Sequence record: OP729297.1
Direction: 5' to 3' (one strand)
Length of the DNA stretch: 64,000 nt
Shown: positions 21,117 to 59,338 of the stretch, piece by piece
How the letters are laid out: every line of letters starts with the position of its first letter
Position numbering within the stretch: position 1 is the first letter of the stretch
The notes under the pieces: model-generated
The model's database searches: none
What the model was told of the DNA's origin: nothing
What the model saw: the letters and a program-made list of their open reading frames with translations, nothing else
Position numbers and translations under genes: made by a program

Positions 21117-21428
21117 TTAGATCTTCGTGAGGTCGTCATGTTGATCTTGAATCTCGGAGCCAGTCAGTTCTGCCTCAGGCTTACGCTGACCTAAATCTGC
21201 TGGTGGTTTAGTGCGTTGTTCTTCACGCTGCTCCTGTTCGCGTTCAGTGCGCTCTTTTTCCTTTTTCTCAATCTCTTCCTTGGGTGTGTCGATACCATAT
21301 TCTTCTTTGATGCGCTGCTGGTCCTGTTGCTCCAGTGCGCGTTGCTGGCCATCGAGAGGCGGTTGTTTCTCCGACGTGTCCTGACGATCAACACGAATCT
21401 CGTGTGAAAGGCTTACAAAGATTTCCAT
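21117..21428 (-). CDS. charged protein with MEIFVSLS N-terminal tag
   Basis: Start after SD GGAG; 103 aa, E/Q/K-rich. Confidence 0.8.
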   Translation of the reverse strand: MEIFVSLSHEIRVDRQDTSEKQPPLDGQQRALEQQDQQRIKEEYGIDTPKEEIEKKEKERTEREQEQREEQRTKPPADLGQRKPEAELTGSEIQDQHDDLTKI

Positions 21429-21448
21429 GGGATTTACTCCAGAATGAC

Positions 21449-21473
21449 AAAAGCGGCAGCACAAGGCCACCGC
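21449..21473 (-). terminator. intrinsic terminator
   Basis: GCGGTGGC..GCTGCCGC followed by TTTT. Confidence 0.65.
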
Positions 21474-21479
21474 TAGATT

Positions 21480-21947
21480 TTAGCTACGCTTCTCCAACAC
21501 CTTGCGATCTTCTTCAATGAAGCGCAGAGTAATTGGAGGGCGTCCTGGGTGCTGAATGATCTGATTGAGATATTCAGCCTGACTGTCTTTCGCGTGTTTC
21601 AGCAACGTGACGTGCGGGCGATACGGCGTGTGCGAAAACTTCGCTGCACCACATGCGTGAATGCGCTCATGCTCCGCACACAGGTCAGGTGATTCGAGAA
21701 CGAGAACCAGAATCTTATCTTGACCTTCGCCGAACAGTTCAGCAGAAGCGACGGTAGCGAAGAACTCACCAGCATCGTTTTGCTCAGCCTGAACGTCAGG
21801 ATTGGTTTCATCATAAGCCAGAGTAACGTGCAATTCTTCTGGCACATCATCGCTATCACGGTCGATGCCGATAGCAGCACCGAGTTTCAGCAGCATCTCC
21901 TCTGAATCATAGTCAGGGAAGACGCGCCACAGGCCACCTTTAACCAT
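21480..21947 (-). CDS. 2H phosphoesterase, Acb1/T4 gp57B-like
   Basis: Two HxT motifs (LHVTLAY, RPHVTL) and LVLVLES..L...H; start moved to MVKGG after SD GAGG. Confidence 0.85.
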   Translation of the reverse strand: MVKGGLWRVFPDYDSEEMLLKLGAAIGIDRDSDDVPEELHVTLAYDETNPDVQAEQNDAGEFFATVASAELFGEGQDKILVLVLESPDLCAEHERIHACGAAKFSHTPYRPHVTLLKHAKDSQAEYLNQIIQHPGRPPITLRFIEEDRKVLEKRS

Positions 21948-22464
21948 TTTGAGTTTCCTCTTTGGGCAAGTGGAAGCAGCCAGCCTGCTGCAATTGACCG
22001 CACTTATCGCAGTGGAACATACCGATTGGTTTACCGTGCAGTAATTCAGGATGACCTTTGCACACGAAGTCCTGATTGCGATAAATACGCAACAGCGCAC
22101 CAGTGACTTTATTGTCCACAGAGATGTATTGGCCAGTAAGATGGCAGTCACTTTCCCGTGCGCGTGTCTGATACTTGGCGACTATCTCACGGACAGTTTC
22201 ATCCAGAGTATCGGCATCGTAATCTTTGGTCACAGGATTATCTGCGGTCTCTGCAATCAGAACATCCAGAACGACGATAGGCGACACAACACCAGTAAGG
22301 TTTGAGTAGCTCAGGCTGCGTTTGGTTTCTTCAAACAAAGTAACCGTAGGTATCTGAGAAGCCGTGCTCGCTGTGGTCAACACGTTAATCAAAGATTCTT
22401 CGTAGACAGCGCTACCGAAGTCTTCCCAGTCTTTTTGGTTGTCGAACTGAATAGCATCAGACAT
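21940..22464 (-). CDS. hypothetical protein with C-terminal Cys/His cluster
   Basis: CKGH..FHCDKC..GCFH. Confidence 0.75.
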   Translation of the reverse strand: MSDAIQFDNQKDWEDFGSAVYEESLINVLTTASTASQIPTVTLFEETKRSLSYSNLTGVVSPIVVLDVLIAETADNPVTKDYDADTLDETVREIVAKYQTRARESDCHLTGQYISVDNKVTGALLRIYRNQDFVCKGHPELLHGKPIGMFHCDKCGQLQQAGCFHLPKEETQNG

Positions 22465-23191
22465 TTGCTTTTTGTCCTTTAGCGTTCGGGATAGGCCATG
22501 CCGCGTAAATCACGTTACGGCATTCAGCCACCAGCGGGAATAATACAGACACACCATAGTCGCGCAACGACACATGAATATCCAGCGTGTCGCTGTACGT
22601 TTTCAACATCGCTTCCATCAAATGATTGACCAAAACGTTATGCGTAGTCGTAAACGCTAGTGGGCTTTCATTAAAGGTGTTCGTAGGATGATCAAACGCT
22701 GGTGCAGGCGCAGGTAGCCAGCAGTCCGTTTGCTCACGCGCGTACTGATCAAAACACACCATAGACAGGAAGGCCTGAACTTGGTCTGCCGTGTACTTGA
22801 GGAAGCGCGATGCAAACTCTTTCTCATGCTCGCCAGGAAGACGCTCAGGAACTGCGGGCGTCAGAGTTTCCTGCTTGGCTTTGTACGGGTTACCACGCGA
22901 CAGATCTTCACGATATTGCGCAACGTACTGACCAAAGAGAGAACGGAAGCGATAGAGAATACCCTGAATAGGAAATTCCAAATCAGTGCGGCTGATTGCA
23001 TTGTCGAATGCCAGCTCGATGCTCTCCGCCAATGAGTGCAGACGTCGCTCATTGATTGGTTGATTGTATGGCGCCTCAGGAGGCACAACACAAAGAGAAC
23101 TGCCGAATTGAATGTGAACCATATTCTCCGCATAGAAGCGACAATGGTCCAGAGCGGCCACAAGGCCAACGAGATTGTTCATCATGATCAC
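22457..23191 (-). CDS. hypothetical protein
   Basis: 244 aa, overlap-coupled. Confidence 0.75.
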   Translation of the reverse strand: MIMMNNLVGLVAALDHCRFYAENMVHIQFGSSLCVVPPEAPYNQPINERRLHSLAESIELAFDNAISRTDLEFPIQGILYRFRSLFGQYVAQYREDLSRGNPYKAKQETLTPAVPERLPGEHEKEFASRFLKYTADQVQAFLSMVCFDQYAREQTDCWLPAPAPAFDHPTNTFNESPLAFTTTHNVLVNHLMEAMLKTYSDTLDIHVSLRDYGVSVLFPLVAECRNVIYAAWPIPNAKGQKANV

Positions 23192-24758: not shown

Positions 24759-25203
24759 AATTAACTCCATTAAGCAGATACATTCGCGGCTTACGAATTT
24801 GAGTAAGCTGGGTCAGGTTCCGAATGTCATACTGACGACGATACGCGAAGTCAGGATCATCCTGTGTGAAATAGCGAGTGATTAACGGCTGGAAGTCGCC
24901 ACTCCTATCTGCTATCACAGGCAACAAATCGAAGTGCAAGGCAGTGCGAGTGAATGCACGTAATAACCAACGCGAGTTCACTTCACAGTTTGGATCTTGC
25001 AGGGCAGTATAGACTTTCGTAGGCTTCATCTGGAGACAGGCTTTGTTCATCACCAGATAGTTGTTGCTCTGCTCGATTGTTGCAGCGACTACAGGATAGA
25101 CCATTCGCTTCATGCACATATAACGAATGGCGATCAGGACTTCGATCATTGCATCATGCGTTTTCGGCACATCGACGGGATCGTTATTCGAGGTCCTCGT
25201 CAT
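24688..25203 (-). CDS. hypothetical protein
   Basis: 3' part of track ORF 24688-25410, from MTRTSNN; the 5' part shadows another gene. Confidence 0.6.
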   Translation of the reverse strand: MTRTSNNDPVDVPKTHDAMIEVLIAIRYMCMKRMVYPVVAATIEQSNNYLVMNKACLQMKPTKVYTALQDPNCEVNSRWLLRAFTRTALHFDLLPVIADRSGDFQPLITRYFTQDDPDFAYRRQYDIRNLTQLTQIRKPRMYLLNGVNYGVQITRQETEEVESRQRGRDSE

Positions 25204-25660
25204 CAATGCTTTCAGCATCTGCATCCCCGTCATCACCTTCGGATTCATCCGCGTCAGGGTCTTCTGCGTCTTCTGCGTCAGCATCTCCAGAGGTGTCAGA
25301 TTTCTTTCCACCTTTCTTAGTCTTAGACTTTCCATCGGAGTCGTCTCCAGTATCATCGGAAGCGTCATCTGTTTCATCGTCACCACCATCTGTATCAGTG
25401 TCGGTATCAATGTCAGTATCGTCTTCTTCGGGTTTAGTTTCGCCGGATTTCTTGGCGCCTTTCTTACCCTTTACAGAATCACCGCCACCAGCCTTTTGAG
25501 CTAGTTTTTCTTTGTCCTTGGCTTCTTCTGTGAGACGGAGCTTCTTCTCCAATGAAGCGTAATCGGCCAGGTCAGTGCGTCCAGTTGTGGACTCTGGGCT
25601 TGATACGCGAGCGCGGTTCTTGTACGTGCTATCCTGACTAAGGCTTACATAAATTTCCAT
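25184..25660 (-). CDS. acidic disordered protein with MEIYVSLS tag
   Basis: 158 aa, SD GAGG, Asp-rich C-terminal half. Confidence 0.85.
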   Translation of the reverse strand: MEIYVSLSQDSTYKNRARVSSPESTTGRTDLADYASLEKKLRLTEEAKDKEKLAQKAGGGDSVKGKKGAKKSGETKPEEDDTDIDTDTDTDGGDDETDDASDDTGDDSDGKSKTKKGGKKSDTSGDADAEDAEDPDADESEGDDGDADAESIDDEDLE

Positions 25661-29523: not shown

Positions 29524-31293
29524 TTAAGCTGCCGCGACAGCTAAAGTGTCGGTGAAGTCAACATAGCCAGCATGTTGCACCACAAGCTGAGCCTGACCTT
29601 CAACCAGAGGGCCGGACAGCGTAATAATGAACTCACCAGTGGACGCATCAGCTACAGCATCACCCGTAACACTACCCTGCGTCAGAGTGACAGTAGAGCC
29701 AGGCGTTGCTTGTCCTGCAACGGTGTCTTCGCCAGCTTTCAGATCAGCATCAAGCTGACCGAGTGCTTCAACGACCAGAGTAACCTGGAAGGAAGCTGGC
29801 AGATATTGAGCGCGTGACAGTTCGACAGTAATCGGACCAGGCACAACGTTCGTGAAGCCGTTAACACTGAACGCACCCTGCGGATTTGAAGACGCAGTTT
29901 TGGTTTCGCCGTTCATGGTGATCTTAACGGTGGCGCTCGCAACAGTGTCACCGACTACAGCAGTCTGACCGTCCTGTGCTTGTTGCAGCGTAGGCGCAGC
30001 GAACTCTTCCAGAATAGTGAACGACGTTGAGCCATCTTCGTAGAACGCAGAGGTAACGTTGACCACACCAGTAGAACCCACACCAGCTTTCGCATCAACA
30101 CCAGTAATGTTGAACGTACCAGCAGCCAGATTGACAGTACCTTCGTACACGCCAGCCTGAACTGTTACGGTAACAGCGATATCGTTCGCTTCGGCATTCA
30201 GACCTGCAATGGTACCAGATACCACAGTGCGGGTTTCGCCGAACGCATCAGCGTCATCAACTGCGATTGCACCGAACTGGAGTTTAGTCGGCTGCATTGT
30301 CGCGGTTGCTTCATCGTAGCCGTCTTTTTCCAGCACACGAATAGACACAGCGCCTTTAACTGCACCGACAGTAGCAGTCCAGTCACCCTGCGCATTGGCA
30401 GTAGCGAACTGATTAGACTGGCCGTCGATCAGGATTTCGACTTCTGCTTCTGGCGTTGCTTTACCAGACAGAGAAGTAGTCAGGAACGATGCGCTGTCAA
30501 TCTGCGCCAGACCAGGCACTGAGTCAGTTACGACAGTTACCGTTTTATCCAGATAGCCGTCAGCAGTGAACGTCAGATGGATATCACCAAACGGCAGTGG
30601 ATCGACGTTGATAGAGAACGCACCAGCGTTATCAGCCTGGCCAGTGAACTGTTTGCTTTGTACCGATACCACGATATTAGCATTCGCAACAGTCGTTCCC
30701 GAAACCGTAGTTTCTTTGAAGACTGCATGAACAACAGGTTCAGGCATTGGTTGCAGCGGCTGTGGGCCTGCTTCGAAGTCGTAACGCGCTGGCGTATAAC
30801 CGTTTGCAGTTACAGTGATCGAGAACGGACCTTCTTCCAGACCAGACACGTCAACAGTGAACACGCCACTACCGTTCGAAGTACCAGTCCACACGTTACC
30901 GTTCTGTTCAACGATCACAACGGCGTTAGGGATTGTGGTACCGTCAACTGACACTGCACCAGCAACTGGAGTTTGTGACAGAGAAGGCTGTGGAATACCT
31001 TCACCAGGCTGAGGCATATCGTCAGGGTTCAGCAGAGCGACACGCTGCAACTGGATCAGAGATTTCAGTTGGCTACACGCCAGCAGGTTTTCCAGAGGCG
31101 CTTGCTGCGTCAGGTCAACAGCATTGCGCGTCGCAGGAATGATAACGTCCTTCATCTGGAAGTTGTCACCTGGGCACTGGAAAGAGATTTGACCCAGCGG
31201 CTGAGTCTGGTTGCTGACCAGCATCTGAGGCTCGCTCAGAATGTTGCGCTGAATAAAAGCGCGATACTGATCGAGAGAAATAAAGTTACTCAT
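29524..31293 (-). CDS. putative virion decoration protein with tandem Ig-like repeats
   Basis: ~5-6 repeats of the pattern SG.T.P.A.V.V....T..A...G.F.I. Confidence 0.8.
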   Translation of the reverse strand: MSNFISLDQYRAFIQRNILSEPQMLVSNQTQPLGQISFQCPGDNFQMKDVIIPATRNAVDLTQQAPLENLLACSQLKSLIQLQRVALLNPDDMPQPGEGIPQPSLSQTPVAGAVSVDGTTIPNAVVIVEQNGNVWTGTSNGSGVFTVDVSGLEEGPFSITVTANGYTPARYDFEAGPQPLQPMPEPVVHAVFKETTVSGTTVANANIVVSVQSKQFTGQADNAGAFSINVDPLPFGDIHLTFTADGYLDKTVTVVTDSVPGLAQIDSASFLTTSLSGKATPEAEVEILIDGQSNQFATANAQGDWTATVGAVKGAVSIRVLEKDGYDEATATMQPTKLQFGAIAVDDADAFGETRTVVSGTIAGLNAEANDIAVTVTVQAGVYEGTVNLAAGTFNITGVDAKAGVGSTGVVNVTSAFYEDGSTSFTILEEFAAPTLQQAQDGQTAVVGDTVASATVKITMNGETKTASSNPQGAFSVNGFTNVVPGPITVELSRAQYLPASFQVTLVVEALGQLDADLKAGEDTVAGQATPGSTVTLTQGSVTGDAVADASTGEFIITLSGPLVEGQAQLVVQHAGYVDFTDTLAVAAA

Positions 31294-31978
31294 TGGAGTC
31301 TCCAGATTGTTTAAGGTTCTGTAGCGACTGGCAGAACGTCTGATACTTACGAGGCGTTAACCGCAGCGCTGTGCCTAAATTAAATTCAGAATTGGTTATC
31401 TTGCCCACCATCTGAGTAAATCGTTCTTCATCGTCCAGGTAGGCAAGCATCCATGGGCGATAGTCGTTGAACGTTTGAACCAGATAGTTATGAACCTGAT
31501 CGACAATGCGGCTTCGGCCTTCTACGTAGTCAAAAGACCGATCGCAATCAGAATCATCAATCCCGGCAATAAACATAGTAAGACAGATAGCAGTACGGGT
31601 ACGATTTTGTGCGCGTCGAATCGTATTGTCCAACTGCTTTTGATCCATCTCTTTGAGTTCTGGGAAGAGGCCACGTTTGTAATAAGCGATCTCCTTGTTA
31701 GAGATTGAACGGTCGGCAGCTTCTTTGCGGTCTAACGCCATACAGCCTGTAGGCGTTTCGCGTGTGCAATACTGGCACGTTGTGATCGGACACTGACCAC
31801 GAAAACGAAACTGTTGTGGCTTGTCTTCCATTTCAGGACAGACAATGATTGGACGATTGTCCTGCACAACACGAATCGGAACTGCTTTTCCTTTATTTGT
31901 TTTGGTGGTCGCAGACTTCTTCACCTTGACAGGTTTCTTTGCCGCAACTGCCTTTTGTTCTTTCTTTAACTTCGCCAT
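31286..31978 (-). CDS. hypothetical protein with Lys-rich N-terminus and Cys cluster
   Basis: CPITTCQYC..C; class B motif upstream at 32015-32023. Confidence 0.75.
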   Translation of the reverse strand: MAKLKKEQKAVAAKKPVKVKKSATTKTNKGKAVPIRVVQDNRPIIVCPEMEDKPQQFRFRGQCPITTCQYCTRETPTGCMALDRKEAADRSISNKEIAYYKRGLFPELKEMDQKQLDNTIRRAQNRTRTAICLTMFIAGIDDSDCDRSFDYVEGRSRIVDQVHNYLVQTFNDYRPWMLAYLDDEERFTQMVGKITNSEFNLGTALRLTPRKYQTFCQSLQNLKQSGDSNE

Positions 31979-32024
31979 TTCTATATCCCACAAGCCGTGT
32001 TAACCAAGTAAGGATATTTACAGA

Positions 32025-32390
32025 TTAATTGGCCACAAACATGGGAAAACCTATGGAGACCGAATACAGTACGCCGTTAGGAATTTCGTTCACAGACGGG
32101 TCACGATAGGTAAACTTCGGAGCCTGAGTAACAGGAGCCAGAATCTGGACAGCGCCGTCGTAAGTACGCGTTGCGCCATCGGTACGCAGCAGTTCGAGAT
32201 AGTCCGCGATCTTGGCTTTCAGATCTTGCAGCAGCGTAGTGCCCTGTTCATCCGAACGAACACTGACCAGAGTTTCCATTGTGGAATACGTCTGGCTGTT
32301 CTCACCGACCTGACCACGATCGAGATAGACAGGTGTGCCAAACTCAGACACTACATCTTTAACGAGAGAAAGCAGTTGTTCATGTTCCAT
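32025..32390 (-). CDS. hypothetical protein
   Basis: Start moved to MEHEQLL after SD GAGG. Confidence 0.7.
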   Translation of the reverse strand: MEHEQLLSLVKDVVSEFGTPVYLDRGQVGENSQTYSTMETLVSVRSDEQGTTLLQDLKAKIADYLELLRTDGATRTYDGAVQILAPVTQAPKFTYRDPSVNEIPNGVLYSVSIGFPMFVAN

Positions 32391-32397
32391 GTTTGCC

Positions 32398-32946
32398 TCA
32401 CAGTACAGGTGCTGACAAGAACTTCGGAACGTAGACGTCAACGATGCGGTCGAAGCCTGCGAATGGTTTCCGGTTCGTATGTCGGTAGAAGGTATACATG
32501 CCAATAAGGCTTGCGTCAAATTCGTGAATCGCTTTGCGACTCTTTTTGGAAGTCAGATTATAATGCGCGTAATAACCTTTAAGGTCCATAGTACGGTTGA
32601 ACGCGTTCTTCCACTGACTTGCCGTGATCAAATCGATCGGGCAGTTCTTTTTCAATGCGAACATGGACAGCACACCAAGCATCAAACTGATAGCCTCAAT
32701 AGTGTTACCGCCAAGGCCACGCGACTGGAATCGCTCGAAGCACATTGCATCAAACGGTCCATAGCGCTTCCATATGTCATCAAGCTCTTTCATGAACTCT
32801 TTGACTGGTTGGCGCATGTCGTGGTGTAGGTTTTGAATTGGATGTTGAAACATCCTCGTCCCGAGAATCTCTATGCGCTTGTCCTTAAATTCAGTGACAG
32901 ACAACGCGAAGTTAACCTTTCCCGGGTCGCCTGAAAGAATACGCAT
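32398..32946 (-). CDS. RuvC-like Holliday junction resolvase
   Basis: MRILSGDPGKVNFALS, CFERFQ, HEFDASLIG (RNase H-fold D/E/D). Confidence 0.8.
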   Translation of the reverse strand: MRILSGDPGKVNFALSVTEFKDKRIEILGTRMFQHPIQNLHHDMRQPVKEFMKELDDIWKRYGPFDAMCFERFQSRGLGGNTIEAISLMLGVLSMFALKKNCPIDLITASQWKNAFNRTMDLKGYYAHYNLTSKKSRKAIHEFDASLIGMYTFYRHTNRKPFAGFDRIVDVYVPKFLSAPVL

Positions 32947-33015
32947 GTTAGGCTCCTCGTTTTAACATACACTAAATAAGTATTTGTCAGGGCAAAGGTC
33001 CAAAATTCTTAGTCA

Positions 33016-33023
33016 CTAATTTC
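33016..33023 (+). promoter_or_regulatory. class C motif CTAATTTC
   Basis: In the divergent intergenic region, 22 nt before ATG. Confidence 0.6.
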
Positions 33024-33045
33024 AAGCACACAGAGGAGAACTTTT

Positions 33046-34155
33046 ATGAGCTGGATTGAGCGCGGGAAACCCCGCAACACATACGACCGGCACAAGACCT
33101 ACGAAACGGAACGCGTACAACGCCGATTGGACAGTGTGCAAAAGGTTGTGCAGTCCAAAGTCGAACAGGCATTGCAGGTAGACGCCACCGATATCGTCAT
33201 CTTCAAGAAAGCGAAGATGGGCCTCACCTGTAGCTGCAACAAAACCGAAAACGATGTACTGGATAACATTGCTGGTGGCCTGAAAAGTTTAGGCCGTGAA
33301 TCCGATGCAATGTCTGCTGGCGTTAAGATCGATACTGTCTCCAAGGGTATGTTCGGCGGTGGGCGCCAAGCAGTAAGCCTTGATGATATCGACGACGGCA
33401 TGAACGCTGTTATGGACGCCGCAGACCTGATGGGCATTGACACAGGTGAGGAGTTCGACGTCAAGTGGGATGGTGGTAACGTTGCGAACTGCGGCATCTG
33501 CTATCGTCAAGGTGTTGTGCCTGGTTTTGTCAGTACAGGCTTCATCTACAACATCGCCACGCACTATCACGTCAAGGAACTGGAGGGTTATACACTCGAT
33601 CAGTCCACCAGCCCAGCGACATTCAGGCAGGTACGTAAAGACGGTTACGCGGATTTCGATCAGCTTATCCCAAAATACTTTACGCAGGCGACTTATTCGG
33701 TGCGTCTGAATGAAACCATGTTACCTGCTTTCCCACGCCCTATGCTGTTGGTTAACGGTGTTGAAGTCGAACTGACAGCAGCTAATCTGGAACGCTGGCG
33801 TGGTAAACATGTGACGATTCGTGTTCGAGGAGTTGAGGCATTCTCACACGTCACGATGATCTTCGATTTGGGTGTGCCGCCTGTTAAAGGCAACATCAGC
33901 GAAGAAGCAAACGTGCTGAACTACGATCAGGAACTGACTGTCGGTAACATCACGGTAGTTCTGCCTGCGCGTAGCGGTGCGATTGAACCAGAAGATATTC
34001 TCGTTCTGCCTTTCAAAAACTACGTGCTGAAAGTTATGGAAGCACCGAAGAAACGCACAGCGAAGAACGATCAGTGGGAATGGGTGTGTACCACTCGTCC
34101 CGTACAGCGCAAAGAGATTGCGTATAACATTTTCAAAGGCTTCAAAATCCGATAG
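33046..34155 (+). CDS. putative virion neck/head-closure-like protein
   Basis: CSC..CGICY..G..PGF Zn motif recalled from jumbo-phage neck proteins; CDS secure, function inferred. Confidence 0.6.
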   Translation: MSWIERGKPRNTYDRHKTYETERVQRRLDSVQKVVQSKVEQALQVDATDIVIFKKAKMGLTCSCNKTENDVLDNIAGGLKSLGRESDAMSAGVKIDTVSKGMFGGGRQAVSLDDIDDGMNAVMDAADLMGIDTGEEFDVKWDGGNVANCGICYRQGVVPGFVSTGFIYNIATHYHVKELEGYTLDQSTSPATFRQVRKDGYADFDQLIPKYFTQATYSVRLNETMLPAFPRPMLLVNGVEVELTAANLERWRGKHVTIRVRGVEAFSHVTMIFDLGVPPVKGNISEEANVLNYDQELTVGNITVVLPARSGAIEPEDILVLPFKNYVLKVMEAPKKRTAKNDQWEWVCTTRPVQRKEIAYNIFKGFKIR

Positions 34156-34164
34156 GAGATTAAC

Positions 34165-34824
34165 ATGACTCGTATTAAGATCAGCTTGAGCAGTGAAGCG
34201 AATGGGGATATGACCAATAAGCCACAGCCTGCTTCTGACATTCCAGATAGCTGGCCAGATCCCAACAAGCTGACAGGTAAAATTCCGTTTGACGCGAATC
34301 AGAGCGAAACAGCCGACGACATGTTCGACCCTGATAAAGCTGTCGAAGGTAACCCTGATTTGCGCAACGGCAACACCAAGCCGGGCGCAGAGGGTAAAGC
34401 GTCACGCCCTGACGAGAACTACCGTGCTGGTGGCCGTACCACGAATCAGGTTGAATCCGTGCATTGCAATAAAGTGAATGCGCTCGGACAGCCTGTTCGT
34501 TTCACGAAAAACGACATTATGAGCGGTGGTCTATCGTTCAAAGACCTGTTCGGTGACGTATTCGGCGATATCTTCGGTGATCGTCGTGTGCAGAAAGCGA
34601 TTAGCAGTGCGCTCACTGCTAACGAAGGCGTATCGGTATCGAAAGGCAAGTCTAAATCAGCTAAAATGCGCTCGCAGATGCTTAAAATGGTCATGCCTGA
34701 GCTATCGCGTGAACAGGGCGAGCGTTTAGCGTCTGCGATGGCCGAACACGACGGCGAAACAGTCAAGCGAATACTGACTCAAATCGGTGTTAAGCTCGGA
34801 AAACGCGTTTCACAGAAAAAATGA
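34165..34824 (+). CDS. hypothetical protein with MTRIKISLSS N-terminus
   Basis: 219 aa, SD AGGAG; variant of the SLS tag. Confidence 0.8.
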   Translation: MTRIKISLSSEANGDMTNKPQPASDIPDSWPDPNKLTGKIPFDANQSETADDMFDPDKAVEGNPDLRNGNTKPGAEGKASRPDENYRAGGRTTNQVESVHCNKVNALGQPVRFTKNDIMSGGLSFKDLFGDVFGDIFGDRRVQKAISSALTANEGVSVSKGKSKSAKMRSQMLKMVMPELSREQGERLASAMAEHDGETVKRILTQIGVKLGKRVSQKK

Positions 34825-35227
34825 TCTGATTTTTCGTTTCAAAATTGGGGAAAGTCCTTGATTTTTCTCGGATTTTCCTCATTTTTAGTCTGAAAAGGGG
34901 CATTTGGTCAAAAAATGTACTACTTTTTTGGAAAAATTTACACGGTTTAGACGACCTAGGGTTTTCCGCTAGATCGCTGCCCAGGGTGCGTAGAGGGTGC
35001 AATCTCGGCTGTTCGGAGCATGGTTTCTTTATTTTCTATGTCTCCGAAACGTGCCGCCTAAAGATGTACCTGTAGTTGTAATGTTCAAGCGTACCACGAG
35101 CGTTGTAGCTAGCCCGCTGTAGCCCATGCCTTCCATGCCTAGCTGTTGTAGCTTCCAGCTGTAGCATTCGGAGTTAAGAGTTGTCTGATTCTGTAAAGAA
35201 ACGATAGAAAAATCAGGTAATCATGAT
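34825..35227. other. candidate replication origin / regulatory intergenic region
   Basis: ~400 nt non-coding; clustered T-tracts; TGTAGC x4 (35104, 35118, 35147, 35160); CCATGCCT x2. Confidence 0.4.
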
Positions 35228-43494: not shown

Positions 43495-43944
43495 ATGGAA
43501 ATCATGGTCAGTTTGAGTGTGCGCTCTAGCCCACTCGAAGATACCAAAGTGAGTTTAGAAAACTCGCGTGACGATCTCAAAGGTGCGCAACGCAGAAGTA
43601 ATGCGGCGCGTAAAGAACTGAACGACAAACAATCCGAGGGAGATACACGAGGTGTTGAGGTCGCACGTAAGAAAGTGCAGGACACTCAACGTTCGGTAAA
43701 GACCCAGCAGGATATCGTTCGCACCAACCAACAACGTGTGAGCCGTGCTGCTGTCGTTGATCGTTTGGTGAAAGAATGGAACCGTCTTGAGAAACTGAAA
43801 GGCACCGACCAAGATACTGACGCGACGAAGAAACAACGCGCAGCATTGTCTGGTCAGATCGCCGAAGCGCGTAAAGCGTTACAGCGTATCAAGCGTCCTA
43901 AATCCACAAGGCCTAAGAAGCCTAAGAAGCCACGGAGGTACTGA
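43495..43944 (+). CDS. basic coiled-coil protein with MEIMVSLS tag
   Basis: Start after SD GGAG; Arg/Lys-rich. Confidence 0.85.
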   Translation: MEIMVSLSVRSSPLEDTKVSLENSRDDLKGAQRRSNAARKELNDKQSEGDTRGVEVARKKVQDTQRSVKTQQDIVRTNQQRVSRAAVVDRLVKEWNRLEKLKGTDQDTDATKKQRAALSGQIAEARKALQRIKRPKSTRPKKPKKPRRY

Positions 43945-44228
43945 TGGAACTCACCGTAGATCTTTCTAAGCCTGTGTGCAACGTACCAACTCCAGAACAG
44001 GACTACGCCGAACTTTGTAAGATTGACGCGAAGATTCGTGGCCTGATGATGGACCAACGTGAAGCAATGCCTGCTGTTATTCATCTGATAGATGATGAAC
44101 TGGTATGGCCTAAGCGCTTGCACAGACAGCTACGTCGGCGTATTGGTCTTGAAAATGTTGATGGTCCGTTCTATGGAGACCACTACCTGGATAATGGTGT
44201 GCGCAAAGTGTTCGCAGGGGCTGCCTAA
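43944..44228 (+). CDS. hypothetical protein
   Basis: 94 aa, TGATG-coupled. Confidence 0.75.
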   Translation: MELTVDLSKPVCNVPTPEQDYAELCKIDAKIRGLMMDQREAMPAVIHLIDDELVWPKRLHRQLRRRIGLENVDGPFYGDHYLDNGVRKVFAGAA

Positions 44229-48759: not shown

Positions 48760-48767
48760 CTAATTTT
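48760..48767 (+). promoter_or_regulatory. class C motif CTAATTTT
   Basis: Upstream of paralog A. Confidence 0.6.
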
Positions 48768-48814: not shown

Positions 48815-49660
48815 ATGCAGTACATATCATCTTTTTTCGGGTTGGGTGGTCCATCACCCACGAACCCGAACGTATTCCTATACGACAGCCGAGAAGACTC
48901 TGACTTCTCCACGCTGACGGATATGACCAAGGCAAACGTCCTTGCTCGAAAAGCCCGTGCTGTTTTAGGCTTCAATGGATATCTCAATCCAATCAGAGGG
49001 CGTAAGTCCAATAAATATCACTTCACCTGCTTGAAGTACCAGCAGCCAAGTTCAATCGCGCTTGATAACTCCTACGACATTGTTCAACAGGACCCTTCAA
49101 AAGGTCTTAGTGGTAACTGTAGTATTGCGGCCTCGCAGTCCTATTCGTTTCTGAACACATCAGGCAACACGACAGTATTTCTGACCACAGGGATGATTGC
49201 TGGTCAGCCTATACAGATGCCTCCGATGAATCTGCATGATGGTAACTGTCCGTACGGTCAATTTGCCACAGGATTCATTGTCAGTCGATATGTCAGAGAC
49301 ACAGGCGTAACTGCAACTGGTACATGTAGCGCTGGTGGTGCAACGGGTGTTTGTACGTATACAACTGTCACGGCGAACGAAACTCCTGCATACGCGTGTA
49401 CGATGATGGGACTGCCTACATCTTTCTATGCTACTGGTGCTAACGGTACACCAGGTGTTTCTGCGGGTGCGTCATATACAGGCGTCTTCGCTCAGAATCA
49501 GACAGGTGAAGATGAAGCGCCTATCCTGAATAAAGCATTCTTCTATAGCTCTGTCCTACGTGCATTCTGCAAGCTCGATACGAATGACTTTGATGCTGTC
49601 ACGTCAGATCCCGGCACTCGTCCTAAGATGCGGTTCAAACAATCGAACTTAGCCATCTAA
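48815..49660 (+). CDS. putative virion protein, paralog family member A
   Basis: MQYISSF..LNPIRG..KYHFT..PGTRPK. Confidence 0.8.
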   Translation: MQYISSFFGLGGPSPTNPNVFLYDSREDSDFSTLTDMTKANVLARKARAVLGFNGYLNPIRGRKSNKYHFTCLKYQQPSSIALDNSYDIVQQDPSKGLSGNCSIAASQSYSFLNTSGNTTVFLTTGMIAGQPIQMPPMNLHDGNCPYGQFATGFIVSRYVRDTGVTATGTCSAGGATGVCTYTTVTANETPAYACTMMGLPTSFYATGANGTPGVSAGASYTGVFAQNQTGEDEAPILNKAFFYSSVLRAFCKLDTNDFDAVTSDPGTRPKMRFKQSNLAI

Positions 49661-49696
49661 CGATAATTTTAACCTGTCTAAAAGAGGGCTATATCT

Positions 49697-50269
49697 ATGG
49701 ACGCTATGACGTTTCGAAAGAAAGCAATCGCGGAAGTTATTGATCGTGAAGGTGGCGAGAAATACACTAACCGCTCTGCTGACCGTGGCGGTCCTACACG
49801 TTGGGGTGTCACGGAAAAGAATGCTCGCGCTTATGGTTACAAAGGCGCTATGCAAGACCTGCCATATGAGATTGCGTATGCGATCTACAGTGCTAACTTC
49901 TGGGACTTCTGCAAATGCGATCAGCTTGCGAAGTACAGTCAGGAACTGGCGCTGTGGGTATTTGACTACGCAGTTAACTCAGGACCACCAGCCGCAATTG
50001 CGGAGTTACAGGACCAGTTGAATATTCTGAACAGCAGAGGCAAGCTCTATCCAGACTTTGCACCTGCTGCGAATATTGGTCCTAAGACTATCGCTGCGCT
50101 GGACGCGTATTGCAAAGTGCGCGATATCAAAGTATTGGCTTATGCCTACAACGGCTGCCGTATTGCGAAGTTGAAAAACATCGCTAAGGCAGATGAAACC
50201 CAGGAAGATAACATTTATGGTTGGTACCAGCGTGTTATCACAATCACTAAACAAGTTGGAGTAAACTAA
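49697..50269 (+). CDS. endolysin, glycoside hydrolase family 108 plus PG-binding domain
   Basis: REGGEKYTNRSADRGGPTRWGVT; FDYAVNSG; DGxIGPxT-like ANIGPKT; YGWYQR. Confidence 0.9.
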   Translation: MDAMTFRKKAIAEVIDREGGEKYTNRSADRGGPTRWGVTEKNARAYGYKGAMQDLPYEIAYAIYSANFWDFCKCDQLAKYSQELALWVFDYAVNSGPPAAIAELQDQLNILNSRGKLYPDFAPAANIGPKTIAALDAYCKVRDIKVLAYAYNGCRIAKLKNIAKADETQEDNIYGWYQRVITITKQVGVN

Positions 50270-50271
50270 CC

Positions 50272-50607
50272 ATGTCCCTGATTAAACTGAATCTGAAAGA
50301 AGCTGTTAAGTCCGAATCTGCTGCCGCTGCTCTGTCTGCGTTCTTCAAAGGCCTGGACAAGAAAGCGCTGTTCGAGATTATCGACGACGGTATGCCGTCT
50401 GACCTGTCTGGTCCTAACGATATCCTCGACCTGCGTTTCATCAGCGCTACTGGTGACACTGCTCGTTTCGGCATCATCACCAAAGACGAAGATGAAGGCT
50501 TCAACGTATCTGGTATCGACATTCGCTTCGAAGGCGAGTTCGACGATGAAGGTGACATTCAGCCAACTCTGGCCGCTGCTAAAAAGGCGCTGGCCCGCCT
50601 GCGTTAA
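50272..50607 (+). CDS. acidic protein with MSLIK..SESA N-terminus
   Basis: 111 aa, SD GGAG. Confidence 0.8.
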   Translation: MSLIKLNLKEAVKSESAAAALSAFFKGLDKKALFEIIDDGMPSDLSGPNDILDLRFISATGDTARFGIITKDEDEGFNVSGIDIRFEGEFDDEGDIQPTLAAAKKALARLR

Positions 50608-51206
50608 TGGAAATCTACGTCTCCCTGTCACAGGCGACGCAAATCACAGCCCAGGCACTGCAAAGTGTCGTGGGCTTTCGCGTATTAGATCACAAACTTT
50701 TACGCGAAGAAGATGGTTTCGCCTTCTACGCGTTTGTCACTTTCATGCGCGATGATTCTGGTGATTATGAACTCAAGATCGCCAAGCTAATTCGCAAAGG
50801 CTTGACAACGCATAGCTTCAAGTTGACTAACATCACGACAGTCAGTGAGGGTTATCAGACGATCTATGAAGCAGCCAACGCTATGGAGCGTTTGAACAAG
50901 AACGGCAAATTCATGTCGCTCTCGTCGCCACCTCCTATTCAGAGCGTTGTGTTCCAGCTCGCTGACTTCCGCATTCCAATCACGCCAGATCTTCAAATCA
51001 AGATCGACGCATGGTGCAATGCGCAGGTTATCTGCCCACTGCGTTACGCTGTATTGAATCCAAGAACAGAAGCGATTGAGGTTGCATTCAAAGATGCCTC
51101 AGCACACAACTCGGATATCATTCAGCGTATGCTGCGTGACTCTTTGTACCAGGCGCTGGGTGATTACTCGGCAGGTAAGAACTTCGATGTGCCTGGGCGA
51201 CCCTAG
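50607..51206 (+). CDS. protein with MEIYVSLS tag and an internal SLS
   Basis: 199 aa, TAATG-coupled. Confidence 0.85.
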   Translation: MEIYVSLSQATQITAQALQSVVGFRVLDHKLLREEDGFAFYAFVTFMRDDSGDYELKIAKLIRKGLTTHSFKLTNITTVSEGYQTIYEAANAMERLNKNGKFMSLSSPPPIQSVVFQLADFRIPITPDLQIKIDAWCNAQVICPLRYAVLNPRTEAIEVAFKDASAHNSDIIQRMLRDSLYQALGDYSAGKNFDVPGRP

Positions 51207-51221
51207 GCATAAGGAAACAAA

Positions 51222-52154
51222 ATGGCACTTATCAAAATCAATATTGCGGATTCTCTGCTGTCTGAGTCGGCAGCTAAGAAGCCAGGCTACAAAATGGCTA
51301 AAGTCGGTGGCGCGTCTGCTCTTGTTATTAGCAGCGAACATAAACCTGCTGTATCGAAGTGCATCTCCAATGCGCGTAAAGCTCAGAAGCTGGCACTGTC
51401 CGCGTTAAAGAACCGTATTGAAGCAAACACTATTGCGGCTGTGCGTGTTCCGCGTGAAGAAAACCCTGCGCGTAAAGCTAAACTGCGCCAGCGTGTCAAG
51501 GCCATGAAAACTAAAGCCTCTGCTGACGTGAAGACAGCCAAACAGCTACTGCGTGAAGGTACCGCCGCTATGAAAGCTGCTGGCCTGAGTGCATTGTCTT
51601 CTCCTCTGAAAGCAAGCGACATTTCATTGACTAGCGAGCCTGGCCGCTCTGCACGTACCGTTAAGGCGGCACAAACCGACTCTCTGATAGTCAAAGGGAA
51701 GAAGGGCTACAGCAAACCTAAATTCCTGGCGGCCTCGAAGTTTGAAGCTCTCGGAAGCAAGGCCCCTACGAAAGCTGCGACCAAAGCTCCGATCAAGAAA
51801 ATGAAAGGCGCTATCACTGGTGCGCATACTCCAGCTAAAGCTCGCGCTGTGAAAAAGCAACGCGCCGAGGCGCTTACTGGAAAAAAGCCTGAAGGGATTA
51901 GTGGTGCGGTGCCCGGAAAGCGTATTGACGACTACACTGATCCCAAAGTGAAATCAGCTATCACTCGCTTTGTTAAGAAGGCGGATTCCGACTTATCCCG
52001 TCTCACCAACGAAGAACTGAAATTTGCACAAAGTTCTTTACTTAACAAACGTCAATCTCGCGCCAATATGGGTCATGGGAAGAAAGCCGGTACGTTATAC
52101 AACGGTGATACTTACCAGCGCGTGATGGATGAAATAAAGCGTCGTAAAGGCTAA
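51222..52154 (+). CDS. Lys/Ala-rich protein with MALIK..SESA N-terminus, putative DNA-binding internal head protein
   Basis: 310 aa, very basic, SD AAGGA. Confidence 0.8.
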   Translation: MALIKINIADSLLSESAAKKPGYKMAKVGGASALVISSEHKPAVSKCISNARKAQKLALSALKNRIEANTIAAVRVPREENPARKAKLRQRVKAMKTKASADVKTAKQLLREGTAAMKAAGLSALSSPLKASDISLTSEPGRSARTVKAAQTDSLIVKGKKGYSKPKFLAASKFEALGSKAPTKAATKAPIKKMKGAITGAHTPAKARAVKKQRAEALTGKKPEGISGAVPGKRIDDYTDPKVKSAITRFVKKADSDLSRLTNEELKFAQSSLLNKRQSRANMGHGKKAGTLYNGDTYQRVMDEIKRRKG

Positions 52155-52663
52155 TGCAGATCTTTGTTAGTCTGAGTGCGCCCACCATCTACTATCGCGG
52201 TCTTGCAGAAGACTGGTCTGATGATCATGCGAAGAAGCAGCACATGACTTGGGTAACTCCAGATCGTGCGTATGCTGAATTGTATGCGGAGGGTGGGCGC
52301 CTCTACAAATTTCATGCGGACCCTGGTCGCTATGCTACCTTGAAGTTCCGTTCTCTGTGGACGGAAGTAAAGTTCGCTGAGATTCATAGACGAGTGAAGC
52401 AGCTTATCATGGAAGCCTTCCAGTTGCATCTGGTTGGCAAAGATGAAGCGATGACTCTCGTTAAAAGGTTAGACGCGCTGAATAACCTCATACCTGCCTC
52501 GCAGTACAAGCGAGTCTATATGTGGTGGGACGAGTATACCGAGATCAGCAAGATACTCAAACTAGCTGGGTACGACTCAATCAAAGGCAATGAAGGTGAG
52601 CACCATGATGTTCCTACCTTCGGCATCTTTGATCACACGCGTGTCAAAATGATTAAGGAGTAA
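52154..52663 (+). CDS. ADP-ribosyltransferase-fold-like protein with MQIFVSLS tag
   Basis: YRG..WVT.D..YA..YA..G.LY..GYDSI..FGIFD pattern; CDS secure, fold inferred. Confidence 0.6.
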   Translation: MQIFVSLSAPTIYYRGLAEDWSDDHAKKQHMTWVTPDRAYAELYAEGGRLYKFHADPGRYATLKFRSLWTEVKFAEIHRRVKQLIMEAFQLHLVGKDEAMTLVKRLDALNNLIPASQYKRVYMWWDEYTEISKILKLAGYDSIKGNEGEHHDVPTFGIFDHTRVKMIKE

Positions 52664-56540: not shown

Positions 56541-56583
56541 AAAAGATTTAGGAAATTTCCTGAGAAAACTTTCAGGGATTATA

Positions 56584-56591
56584 CTAATTTT
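56584..56591 (+). promoter_or_regulatory. class C motif CTAATTTT
   Basis: Upstream of the histone-like gene. Confidence 0.6.
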
Positions 56592-57321: not shown

Positions 57322-57351
57322 TCGGCCTGGTCGATAGACATTACTACAAAC

Positions 57352-57381
57352 AAAAAGGGGTGGCTTCGGCTGCCCCTTTTT
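57352..57381. terminator. intrinsic terminator
   Basis: GGGGTGGCTTCGGCTGCCCC followed by TTTTT. Confidence 0.85.
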
Positions 57382-57393
57382 GTATTTCTGTCA

Positions 57394-57401
57394 CTAATTT
57401 T
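57394..57401 (+). promoter_or_regulatory. class C motif CTAATTTT
   Basis: Upstream of the MEIQVSLS gene. Confidence 0.6.
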
Positions 57402-57430
57402 TCTTCAATATCCGAACACTGGGGAAAATC

Positions 57431-59338
57431 ATGGAAATACAGGTTAGCTTGTCTGCCCTGGCTCCTTCACAATATCGACCGTACTTGAAGAACTGGACGC
57501 CAAACAAAGCGCTCTTAAAAATCTTCGAGCGCATAAGCGGTAAGACCGGCCGCAAGGCAATGCGCATTTATTTCGATATCGGCCATAACGTCATTAAGAA
57601 CGCCGATGTGTTGTCCACTGCACCGCAGCCTATCAACGATTTTCTTGCCGAAAAGAAAATCACTGTACTGGATTATTTTGCAGGTATCGGTCGTGATTCT
57701 CACGGGCGTACTGTGCGTTTAGGTAAAGCTCTTGCCAAAGAAGCCGAACTCAAGAAGATGTTCGACTCTGACCCTAATCGTAAAGTTGTAGCGCAAGAAG
57801 GTAAGAGTGGTCGCATGGTGTGTCTGTCAATGCACCCATACGATATTGCAGGCATGTCTACTGACCGTGGTTGGGTGAGCTGTATGAACCTGGTCAACGG
57901 CACGAACAAACACTACATCAAATCAGAAGTGAAGACAGGCACTTTAATAGCATATCTTATTGACGCTAACGACAAGAATATCAACAAGCCTGTTGCTCGC
58001 TGCCTGTTGAAACCTTTCTTTGACGTCGATGCTGTTAGGCCGAGTGTTGGCAAGAAAGGCGTTACTGTCGTATATCTTGCAGACCGTGCGTACCCAGATA
58101 AGAACGCCACGTTTGTAATGCAGGTTCAGGACTGGGTTGACCAGAATATCAATAAAGACCTTGCTGCCGGTAAAACTACGTTAAGTCTCGCGCTGCCTGA
58201 CAAGTTGTATGACGATATGCAGCGTGGCATGTTTAAGTATGATGCATCTAAGACTGCCGCTGAAAACAACGAGGCGTCCTACGCAGAACTGCGTATGCGT
58301 CAAGAAGTGCGTAATGATCCTGATGGCTATTTGTCGAAGATTACTGCTACGGAATATACGGACCGACTCGGCAACAATATCGCTAACATGTCGAAAGAGT
58401 TCTTCTCGTTTGTGCGTAAAGTCCTCGCTTCTGGTTGGGGCGGCGATGACCTGCTGTCTAAGGTCACCAAAGCAGTTGCACATATGGAGGCTTTTGAAAG
58501 CCCTAGTGTGTACTCTCAGATCAAGAAAGCCTATCTCGACTACGCCTCTAACAATCTGTCAGATAGTCAGTTGCTGGAGCAGGCCGAGCTGGTGGGCTTC
58601 AACCCAGGCCTAGCTATACCTCTTCTTGGTTTTGTCGAGAGTGAGGATGAGAGCATGACTGACCGCGTTACTCAATCCCTTGATACGATTGCCCTGTATT
58701 CTAAAAAGGATGGAAGTGAGGGTGGATATCCTGACGCACTGCGTGAGATTTGGGATAAGGCAAAATATTTTTCAGATTCTGATGGTGTGTTCTGGCGACA
58801 GGCTTCGTATGTAGGTTTCAATGGCGGTACCGTAGAGTCGGTACTTGAGGACATGAATAGCCGCTACAGCAAAGAAAATCTTGTGGCCGCGCTTGTGTCT
58901 CTGTACTTCGCTGTTCGAGACAAAGATAAAATTGAAGCATTGACAGCCAAATCGTTAAAGGCCTGTGATGATGTTGTTCGCCCTGATTACACTGAATATG
59001 CACTGCCTATATTTGACGGCCTGACTCCTATTAAGATTCATCTAGGCATGCGCCTGACAAACAGAATAGTGGCTGATACTCATGGCTTCGACAAGAAGAC
59101 ATTCAGAAAAGTGAATGCTAACAGATTCCAAATGGAGAAAGGCATCACTGCCTCGGATGTAATTAACTCCAACGTTATTGCTGATGTAGGCTTGACGTTT
59201 GTGGACAAGATCGCTGACTCGTCTGGTTTCGTTGCGTTTTACGTCAAAGACCAGCTTGACGCAGAGGCATATTCCGCGGCAATTAATGCTATTGAGAAAG
59301 CTATTGTTCTCAACTATCTCGATCACGCAACCAATTAA
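57431..59338 (+). CDS. large protein with MEIQVSLS tag
   Basis: 635 aa; HPYDIAGMSTDRGWVSCM motif. Confidence 0.85.
   Translation: MEIQVSLSALAPSQYRPYLKNWTPNKALLKIFERISGKTGRKAMRIYFDIGHNVIKNADVLSTAPQPINDFLAEKKITVLDYFAGIGRDSHGRTVRLGKALAKEAELKKMFDSDPNRKVVAQEGKSGRMVCLSMHPYDIAGMSTDRGWVSCMNLVNGTNKHYIKSEVKTGTLIAYLIDANDKNINKPVARCLLKPFFDVDAVRPSVGKKGVTVVYLADRAYPDKNATFVMQVQDWVDQNINKDLAAGKTTLSLALPDKLYDDMQRGMFKYDASKTAAENNEASYAELRMRQEVRNDPDGYLSKITATEYTDRLGNNIANMSKEFFSFVRKVLASGWGGDDLLSKVTKAVAHMEAFESPSVYSQIKKAYLDYASNNLSDSQLLEQAELVGFNPGLAIPLLGFVESEDESMTDRVTQSLDTIALYSKKDGSEGGYPDALREIWDKAKYFSDSDGVFWRQASYVGFNGGTVESVLEDMNSRYSKENLVAALVSLYFAVRDKDKIEALTAKSLKACDDVVRPDYTEYALPIFDGLTPIKIHLGMRLTNRIVADTHGFDKKTFRKVNANRFQMEKGITASDVINSNVIADVGLTFVDKIADSSGFVAFYVKDQLDAEAYSAAINAIEKAIVLNYLDHATN

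Follow-up and report, generated by a model that had tools for sequence, protein, structure and literature searches.

A conserved eight-residue N-terminal peptide on unrelated proteins of Erwinia phage vB_Ea_2910A and other jumbo phages is a candidate capsid-targeting signal

Why should proteins with nothing else in common begin with the same eight residues? The question is raised by a 64,000-nucleotide (nt) stretch of the genome of Erwinia phage vB_Ea_2910A (2910A; OP729297.1, 262,854 bp, genus Alexandravirus), in which seven genes open with a peptide of the form M[EQ]IxVSLS, here called the tag. This whole stretch, referred to below as the window, is 100% identical to positions 186001-250000 of the record, and coordinates are those of the window unless the record is named. 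For nearly all genes in OP729297.1, the annotation reads 'hypothetical protein'. Dickeya phages AD1 and JA29 and Erwinia phages Y3, Yoloswag and Alexandra are grouped with 2910A among the PaBG/Lu11 'Lupandier' phages, which are 'hairy' jumbo myoviruses (PMC7412058; PMC6143709); of these relatives, JA29 was assigned to Salmondvirus and Y3 to Sasquatchvirus. The original prediction held that the tag is a Ser-based (S-x-S) packaging and cleavage signal on head-loaded proteins that are injected into the host, analogous to the N-terminal capsid-targeting sequence (CTS) which is carried by the T4 internal proteins IPI-III and Alt and removed by the prohead protease gp21 (PMC5694885; PMC5512222). In the analysis reported here, the tag emerged as a functional peptide signal with near certainty. 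The explanation that we favour, with somewhat better than even confidence, is that it serves as a capsid-targeting propeptide like the T4 CTS and is removed by a prohead protease whose cut follows small-x-small.

All seven tagged starts were present as predicted and coincided with annotated coding sequence (CDS) starts of the record. The window contains six matches to a degenerate DNA pattern for the tag, whereas 100 shuffles gave 0.00. The core [ILV]x[ILV]S[ILVM]S had a genome-wide frequency of 1.8e-4 per six-frame position; 0.059 occurrences would be expected at one fixed N-terminal register in 334 CDS and eight were observed (Poisson P = 3.6e-15). Chance is excluded as the origin of the shared N-terminus. 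The eighth protein in exact register was a NUDIX hydrolase starting MMINVSLS, encoded outside the window at record position 52296. The seven genes listed with the original prediction were an incomplete set, lacking this hydrolase as well as five leaders of relaxed, variant or type-B form (34165+, 43944+, 50272+, 51222+ and 12518-) that were recognized by reading all N-termini of the window. In type-B leaders, with the starts MSLIKLNLKEAV and MALIKINI, a beta-strand-like start similar to the tag is followed by S-x-S about nine residues on. The strict, relaxed and type-B forms together amount to about 13 leader-bearing proteins, 12 of them inside the window (Table 1). The consensus of the tag is M-x-[IVL]-x-[VI]-S-[LIM]-S, with hydrophobic residues at positions 3, 5 and 7 and Ser at positions 6 and 8.

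The 13 leader proteins exhibited no detectable mutual similarity past the leader. The earlier statement that nothing is shared after residue 8 was nearly right, but a second motif, SP[ELC][SET][DT]T (SSPESTT, DSPCTTPD and SSPLEDT), was found 12-20 residues after the tag in three unrelated proteins (25184-25660(-), 42828-43364 and 43495-43944), and was kept in their JA29 and Y3 orthologs.

That selection acts on the peptide rather than on a copied DNA element had been proposed from the two Ser codons of the seven genes (AGC/TCA, AGC/AGT, TCA/TCG, AGT/AGT, TCC/TCA, AGT/AGT and AGC/TCT), which were confirmed. The proposal is strongly supported by codon diversity and by conservation. The tag was encoded by 66 distinct DNA sequences in the collected loci. 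In these, all six Ser codons occurred at both positions 6 and 8, all six Leu codons at position 7 and all four Val codons at position 5, and the start codon was ATG in 61, TTG in four and GTG in one. The TTG starts include the 52154 ortholog in AD1 and in one IMG/VR relative (L016), where TTG directly follows a stop codon and the product begins (M)Q[IV]FVSLS. Residues are held at positions 3, 5, 6, 7 and 8, whereas positions 2 (E, K, Q, M or H) and 4 (any residue) are free to vary.

The tag was kept in the orthologs of seven Alexandravirus-level genomes, as expected under the original prediction, and it persists in three other genera as well as in distantly related metagenomic jumbo phages, a phylogenetic span that comes from protein-anchored searches only. 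It is present on six annotated genes of JA29 and on five genes in the 48-kb region of Y3 that was examined. The 42828 orthologs kept M[EK]IFVSLS in seven loci, with the JA29 variant MQIVFSLS; those of 25660(-) start MEIYVSLS in AD1, MHVLISLS in JA29 and MIVFISLS in Y3; those of 43495 start MEIQVSLS, MKILISLS or MQVLISLS; and those of 50607 start MEIYVSLS or MQIFVSLS, with MEILVSIS in JA29. The variant in which Asp replaces the first Ser also occurs on JA29 gp182, gp183 and gp221, and the type-B leader of 50272 has a JA29 counterpart reading MIVEIDLSVEQQSTS/ASAK (here and below, a slash marks the predicted cut). The tag can also be used for correcting gene starts. In AD1 (NC_048054.1), gp191 lies at 163772-164371 on the minus strand and has its RefSeq start at 164233; its true start is placed at 164371, 46 codons upstream, because the conserved MEIYVSLS and an overlapping TAATG are found there.

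The 635-amino-acid (aa) product of 57431 offers the widest view of how the tag is attached. A search space of 5.8 billion proteins returned 116 members of its family, of which about 60 open with the tag followed by the conserved ALxPSQYRxYxKGW; homologs at 37-39% identity start MEIQVSLS, MELMVSLS or MKLMVSMS. In more distant members the same domain follows a short leader unrelated to the tag, such as MRYSEFSEALKPSEYR, which makes the tag an add-on of certain lineages. The AlphaFold2 model (mean predicted local distance difference test score, pLDDT, 89) had pLDDT below 50 for residues 1-6 and a first helix beginning at residue 12, so the tag is modelled as a free N-terminal extension. The protein had no sequence match in the PDB and no Pfam or named BFVD match, and its model had no PDB fold match and only uncharacterised viral matches. 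The invariant residues of the family (S133, H135, Y137, D138, G141, S143, R146, W148 and C151) have an enzyme-like look. The family often occurs as two tandem paralogs, both tagged (JA29 gp178/gp179; contig L077 10001-14327; contig L091 2797-7184), and its members include one protein of Agrobacterium phage Atu_ph07.

In 2910A itself, two of the carriers are low-complexity and very acidic, two are strongly basic (net +19 and +44) and one is a basic protein of 546 aa; the others are the NUDIX hydrolase, the enzyme-like 635-aa protein and several ORFans. The tag was on none of the replication, nucleotide-metabolism or major structural proteins when the window N-termini were read against the AD1 annotation. 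Pfam and PHROG scans gave no function for eight of the nine proteins first scanned, the NUDIX hydrolase being the exception, and a Pfam scan of four type-B or variant leader proteins of the window gave no match. The 169-aa product of 52154 was considered as a divergent ART-PolyVal protein and rejected (marginal BLASTP match; hhalign probability 1%).

The carriers in distant phages are the most telling evidence. Distant jumbo-phage contigs (L077, L079, L089, L090 and L091) were reached via tagged members of the 635-aa family. On L077, a 265-kb ENA contig, seven consecutive genes are tagged, and their products include a SprT-like peptidase (PF10263, 5e-8), two ART-PolyVal ADP-ribosyltransferases (1.3e-30 and 2.9e-10) and an ATLF-like protein whose match (8.9e-6) lies just under the Pfam cut-off. 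One of the four tagged genes on the 172-kb contig L079 encodes Acb1, the inhibitor of the cyclic-oligonucleotide-based antiphage signalling system CBASS (1.6e-14). L089 carries a tagged NUDIX protein, L090 a tagged SprT-like protein and L091 five tagged genes in a row. The SprT-like proteins of L077 and L090 start ME(R)LLVSLS and MEILVSLS. The NUDIX matches on tagged proteins scored 1.9e-13 and 1.6e-16, and the ART-PolyVal, SprT-like, Acb1 and NUDIX matches were all above Pfam cut-offs. Acb1, which we take to be a member of the 2H-phosphoesterases, also had a weak sub-threshold Pfam match to 2_5_RNA_ligase2. ART domains, zincin-like peptidases and 2H-phosphoesterases were predicted by Iyer et al. 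(2017) to be packaged in the head and injected, as fusions within 'polyvalent proteins' or to MuF/portal proteins (PMC5512222), and in that work NUDIX occurs solely next to such domains or fused to them (PMC5512222). The effector repertoire of polyvalent proteins was thus found on tagged proteins, and these carriers lend support to the earlier claim that the tag marks injected effectors. The arrangement as a multi-domain polypeptide or MuF/portal fusion was not found: the tagged proteins scanned are single-domain, 129-434 aa long, and without a MuF or portal match.

The head module lies outside the window, at 28-38 kb of the record. It encodes a head maturation protease, a KMPT-N/HExxH protein, a 667-aa scaffold-like protein, a virion protein and a 366-aa major capsid protein (MCP). 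The prohead protease called for by the original prediction has a candidate at record 31383-32162, located by its match to the phrog_18299 head maturation protease (6e-127); it had no Pfam match and no PDB sequence match. The best PDB fold match of its model (pLDDT 86) was T4 gp21 (5jbl), a weak match (E 0.1, probability 0.66, template-modelling score 0.52). Three proteins of head maturation have S-x-S-like motifs in common. In the MCP, residues 63-68 read [LIV]V[HQ]SxS in 11 sequences within an otherwise variable linker, x being H, T, V, E, N or Q, and a predicted cut after S68 would remove 18.6% of the protein. The MCP of PaBG, reported to have the HK97 fold, loses about 20% on maturation, and several PaBG virion proteins are processed (PaBG paper). 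Because the two fractions agree, S68 is proposed as the MCP cleavage point. In the scaffold-like protein there are six [FIV][DEQ]S[EQ]S repeats together with LVSLS/R and KVSLS/K, all conserved or conservatively changed in JA29. In about 30 of 44 diverse protease homologs, [SA]x[SA]F occurs within the variable N-terminal 10-30 residues, as expected if the protease processes itself.

The 667-aa protein (record 33369-35372), labelled 'ATPase' in PHROG and RefSeq, had no ATPase motif match and contains a tract of about 120 Asp/Glu residues; from its composition it looks like a scaffold or internal core protein, which makes the 'ATPase' label a probable error. The gene that immediately follows that of the prohead protease, at record 32162-33292, encodes a protein with a KMPT-N domain (4e-27) and a HELAH zinc-peptidase motif that starts MLGSLS and is predicted to be a second, metallo-type peptidase in the head module. 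Within the window, 38144-39118(+) encodes a conserved 'peptidase' (phrog_17197) without HExxH or HxxEH; its gene belongs to the late rightward block and lies upstream of several tagged genes. PaBG gp182, annotated as a Zn-metalloprotease, occupies the syntenic position upstream of a clamp-loader gene, and was matched by position, not homology.

In the Pseudomonas relatives, both the tag and the putative cleavage site appear shifted to A-x-[AS]. The Lu11 MCP reads QVATAS/S at the homologous position, and the Lu11 scaffold-like protein contains VVATASS, QVATASS and ERATASA; that of PaBG contains EEATAS twice, and all four in-frame ATAS occurrences in PaBG fall in head or virion-module proteins. 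Tag-like N-termini in this clade are MKVYLAIAAS (Lu11_0068, adjoining the scaffold gene), MQLLIAMAS (PaBG gp221) and MELAIASD (PaBG SprT-like gp89). The direction of this joint change is the one that a shared protease site would predict. The covariation argument draws on few proteins, because the only PaBG homolog of a tagged protein is an untagged NUDIX protein and the Lu11 region syntenic with the window has only vague tag-like starts. The claim that S-x-S is the protease site gains indirect support from its recurrence in the MCP, the scaffold-like protein and the protease N-terminus together with this putative covariation.

The expression context was compared as well. Most tagged genes lie behind a promoter-like motif, GCTAATTT, which is also found at structural operons. 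Its core CTAATTT, usually preceded by G/A-C, had been reported in front of two tagged genes (42828 and 57431), and both copies were recovered. There are 20 copies in the genome, all co-oriented with the local genes and 15-16 of them 30-75 nt upstream of co-oriented annotated starts. The operons headed by this motif include those for tail sheath, portal, baseplate/PAAR and head-tail connector (with the AD1 annotation). Ten of the 13 leader genes are directly behind CTAATTT or a few genes downstream: 42828, 57431 and 12518(-) follow it directly, and seven lie within operons headed by it, namely 34165, the group 50272, 50607, 51222 and 52154, the NUDIX gene, and 43495 and 43944, which come after a terminator-like hairpin. 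An analogous 'middle/late promoter', CTGTAAATA, is annotated in Lu11. CTAATTT is probably a late promoter used with the sigma factor that the phage encodes at 20034-21071(-). One copy, at 40652, falls in a 470-nt gap without an annotated gene.

From these lines of evidence we infer prohead binding, a cut after the second Ser, presence in the virion and injection, which may be connected as follows. The leader would be a short, flexible, beta-strand-prone N-terminal extension that docks unrelated cargo onto the assembling prohead core or the inner shell, with the acidic scaffold-like protein and the N-terminal arm of the MCP as candidate partners. It would end in the recognition site of a gp21-like prohead protease, which in this group would be small-x-small (S-x-S) rather than Glu. 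After shell assembly, the protease would cut past the second small residue, either at once (directly after VSLS) or a few residues downstream (type B), and the same protease would remove the N-terminal 68 residues of the MCP and fragment the acidic scaffold-like protein. Mature cargo would remain inside the head and pass into the host along with the DNA, where basic K/A-rich and acidic proteins may act on the packaged DNA or as DNA mimics, and NUDIX, Acb1, ART and SprT-like proteins could act at once on host signalling and defence. Targeting to the virion is moderately favoured by the sequence evidence, and for cleavage at S-x-S the balance is about even. No virion proteome for Alexandravirus, Salmondvirus or Sasquatchvirus was found in the literature; the Dickeya phage paper (PMC6143709) contains no mass spectrometry and the Y3 GenBank record no proteomics-based labels. 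The closest virion data come from PaBG, whose gp83 was identified in purified virions (Table 1 of PMC7412058). This protein starts MLIKINLLEAVAAK, close to the type-B leaders, and at 320 aa compares with the 310-aa product of 51222, both being K/A-rich and basic.

Several observations weigh against a capsid-targeting propeptide cut at S-x-S. All characterised phage relatives of this protease type (T4, phiKZ and SPN3US) cut after Glu (PMC5694885), and the fold match of the candidate protease to gp21 is weak, with the scores given above. Because S-x-S is common on its own, the proposed cleavage motif depends on position and conservation, not on frequency. The PaBG MCP has no clear small-x-small motif at the position homologous to residues 63-68, S-x-S at the second MCP position was not seen in PaBG or RSL1, and the PaBG NUDIX protein is untagged. 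In the 635-aa and 169-aa proteins, the fold starts within 1-4 residues of the tag, which gives a protease little linker. The leader of PaBG gp83 is only loosely similar and resembles the type-B variant only, and the PaBG gel study covered only 14 abundant virion proteins (PMC7412058). Finally, 21428(-) and 25660(-) had no CTAATTT in the 60-120 nt read upstream and lie in the leftward block, adjoining the sigma-factor, SSB and RecA genes.

Other explanations of the shared start were weighed against the same evidence. A docking strand that attaches its carriers by beta-strand augmentation to a tail or capsid surface, such as the 'hairs', or to another hub, and not to the head interior, would suit the alternating hydrophobic residues; a late-type promoter context fits any virion part, and the hair proteins of the 'hairy' myoviruses AD1, the JA phages, Y3 and Lu11 are unexplained (PMC6143709). 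However, NUDIX, Acb1, ART-PolyVal and SprT-like carriers have cytoplasmic substrates and would serve no purpose on a virion's exterior, and S-x-S in the MCP propeptide, the scaffold-like protein and the protease, along with the Pseudomonas covariation, would go unexplained, which makes surface docking unlikely in our view. Slightly less probable is that the tag is a removable pro-peptide without a targeting role, which keeps enzymes or DNA-binding proteins inactive until the prohead protease, the KMPT-N/HExxH protein or the peptidase of 38144-39118 removes it. The link of S-x-S to protease substrates, the two additional conserved peptidase-like genes and the abutment of the tag on the catalytic domain in several carriers all agree with such a role, yet the six conserved residues before S-x-S exceed what a cleavage site needs, the acidic and basic low-complexity proteins have no activity to mask, and eight residues rarely inhibit a fold when they project as a disordered tail.

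Signals acting within the cytoplasm, or on the DNA itself, fared worse. Short hydrophobic N-terminal peptides can be recognized by AAA+ proteases or chaperones, and two carriers are among early- or middle-looking genes; a degron or chaperone-binding signal that times turnover or folding could be read from this, but anti-defence enzymes must persist, the tag varies along with head-protein motifs, and the tagged genes cluster behind a structural-gene promoter motif, so that we regard this possibility as quite improbable. An export or membrane-insertion signal would share the N-terminal place and the small residues at -3/-1 of a signal-peptidase site. With only eight residues, Glu, Gln or Lys at position 2, three hydrophobic positions only, no positive n-region and no hydrophobic core of at least seven residues, and on highly charged, soluble carriers, the tag does not resemble a Sec-type signal peptide, and this very improbable reading was excluded on length and charge. 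As for a nucleic-acid element, either a translation-initiation cassette or a recombination scar with the peptide as by-product, A-rich second codons (GAA, AAA) do favour initiation and a similar terminator plus TTCTGGAG lies upstream of two tagged genes; but the use of every synonymous codon at positions 5-8, AGY/TCN switches that need two substitutions, variable start codons, the freedom of positions 2 and 4 against the constraint on 3 and 5-8, and otherwise unrelated upstream DNA leave it a negligible chance, and codon diversity effectively refutes a DNA-level reading.

If the tag is a capsid-targeting propeptide, it would be related in principle to several known systems and identical to none of them. 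Like the T4 CTS, it is a short N-terminal peptide on unrelated proteins, its carriers recall the small charged internal proteins and the injected enzyme of T4, and the T4 peptide ends in a protease site that recurs in the MCP and scaffold, as is predicted for the tag. Unlike the 10-20 residues of T4, only eight residues are held here, the sequence is unrelated, and the predicted cut falls after Ser in S-x-S rather than after Glu in [LI]-x-E, residues 6-8 being S-[LIM]-S. The phage lineage is another one (HK97-type 366-aa MCP, 'Lupandier'), and the longer variant separates the targeting strand from the site. Encapsulin cargo-loading peptides are also short, with alternating small and hydrophobic residues, bind the inside of an HK97-fold shell and suffice for loading. 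They differ in being usually C-terminal, in having another consensus, in not being removed by a protease and in serving cellular nanocompartments, whereas the tag is N-terminal and predicted to be removed. Assemblin of herpesviruses, of the same fold family as T4 gp21, cuts its maturation and release sites between Ala and Ser, with small or hydrophobic residues at P3/P4. Such cleavage after a small residue fits the predicted small-x-small specificity, but the fold assignment of the 2910A protease is weak and its specificity is deduced from motif recurrence only.

Also comparable are the propeptides of head and ejection proteins of the jumbo phages phiKZ, 201phi2-1 and SPN3US, which are cut at [SAG]-x-E (PMC5694885), many packaged, ejected proteins being processed there by a gp21-like protease; the SPN3US paralogs gp53 and gp54 have an identical 15-residue N-terminus that is thought to be CTS-like (PMC5694885). 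The propeptides of phiKZ and SPN3US are mostly longer than 100 residues, shared by paralogs only and cut after Glu, in contrast to an eight-residue tag on non-homologous proteins across genera. Polyvalent and MuF-fused effectors have the same domain repertoire (ART-PolyVal, zincin/SprT-like, lethal-factor-like, 2H/Acb1 and NUDIX neighbours) and the same proposed delivery with the DNA, but they are fused in a giant protein or to MuF/portal, whereas the tagged proteins are separate and small, each with its own tag. The tag therefore appears distinct from both, pointing to another packaging solution for the same domains. No description of the peptide came out of literature searches on the tag, on CTS in jumbo phages and on polyvalent-protein and jumbo-phage papers. 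It would thus work like the T4 CTS from outside that sequence family, and the peptide itself appears new to the searchable literature.

Table 1. Leader-bearing genes and CTAATTT motifs in the window
Feature	Coordinates	Strand	Description
Tag MEIFVSLS	21117-21428	-	103 aa, highly charged, E/K/Q-rich; tag codons 21405-21428
Tag MEIYVSLS	25184-25660	-	158 aa, very acidic low-complexity (33% D+E); tag codons 25637-25660; second motif SSPESTT
Tag MEIFVSLS	42828-43364	+	178 aa; promoter-like motif immediately upstream
Tag MEIMVSLS	43495-43944	+	149 aa, basic (net +19), coiled-coil-like; second motif SSPLEDT
Tag MEIYVSLS	50607-51206	+	199 aa; start overlaps preceding stop (TAATG)
Tag MQIFVSLS	52154-52663	+	169 aa
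Tag MEIQVSLS	57431-59338	+	635 aa; wide phage family with conserved N-terminal domain ALxPSQYR...HPYDIAGMSTDRGW
Relaxed tag MTRIKISLS	34165-34824	+	219 aa; core shifted one residue
Variant tag MELTVDLS	43944-44228	+	94 aa; Asp replaces first Ser
Type-B leader MSLIKLNLKEAVKSES/AAAA	50272-50607	+	111 aa; beta-strand-like start, S-x-S about 9 residues later
Type-B leader MALIKINIADSLLSES/AAKK	51222-52154	+	310 aa, K/A-rich, strongly basic (net +44)
Type-B leader MSLIKIEGVASTS/APTR	10878-12518	-	546 aa, basic; promoter-like motif 12559-12565 immediately upstream
CTAATTT	42786-42792	+	42 nt upstream of 42828
CTAATTT	57394-57400	+	37 nt upstream of 57431
CTAATTT	48760-48766	+	heads operon 48815-52663: endolysin gene 49697 and four leader-bearing genes
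CTAATTT	33016-33022	+	heads operon containing 34165
CTAATTT	12559-12565	-	47 nt upstream of 12518(-)
Other CTAATTT	40652-40658, 56584-56590, 59378-59384, 62989-62995		11 more in rest of genome

Two further products of the region deserve a record. Downstream of the tagged cluster, a SNF2/helicase-like protein of about 1950 aa is encoded at record 252382-258228, and in PaBG at KF147891.1 148541-154450; this giant helicase-like protein seems to be packaged in the phage group, because PaBG gp202 is the largest band in purified virions. At 29524-31293(-), the window encodes a 589-aa protein that is annotated as an inverse-autotransporter beta-barrel-domain protein in AD1, JA29 and Y3, an odd feature for a lytic phage.

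A broader reading, to which we give slightly less than even credence, joins these elements: a portable eight-residue tag would define the whole 'injectome' of several jumbo-phage lineages, delivering ready-made anti-defence enzymes, among them the anti-CBASS phosphodiesterase Acb1, NUDIX hydrolases, ADP-ribosyltransferases and SprT-like peptidases, together with histone-like basic and DNA-mimic-like acidic proteins, while the gp21-like prohead protease would have exchanged Glu specificity for small-x-small, the tag and the site evolving together as S-x-S in enterobacterial and A-x-[AS] in Pseudomonas phages. The findings also correct annotations, such as those of gene starts and of the scaffold-like protein labelled 'ATPase'. 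If the capsid-targeting role is true, a regular expression would be enough to list the proteins that this jumbo-phage group carries into the cell, most of which are now 'hypothetical'. The group would provide a second case of the principle behind the T4 CTS, much shorter, sequence-independent and from another capsid lineage, along with a prohead protease of new specificity and a compact means of packaging reporter proteins in large phage heads for laboratory use. The list already holds known anti-defence families; counter-defence in these phages would then be pre-made rather than expressed after entry, and the timing of the contest between phage and host defence would have to be rethought.

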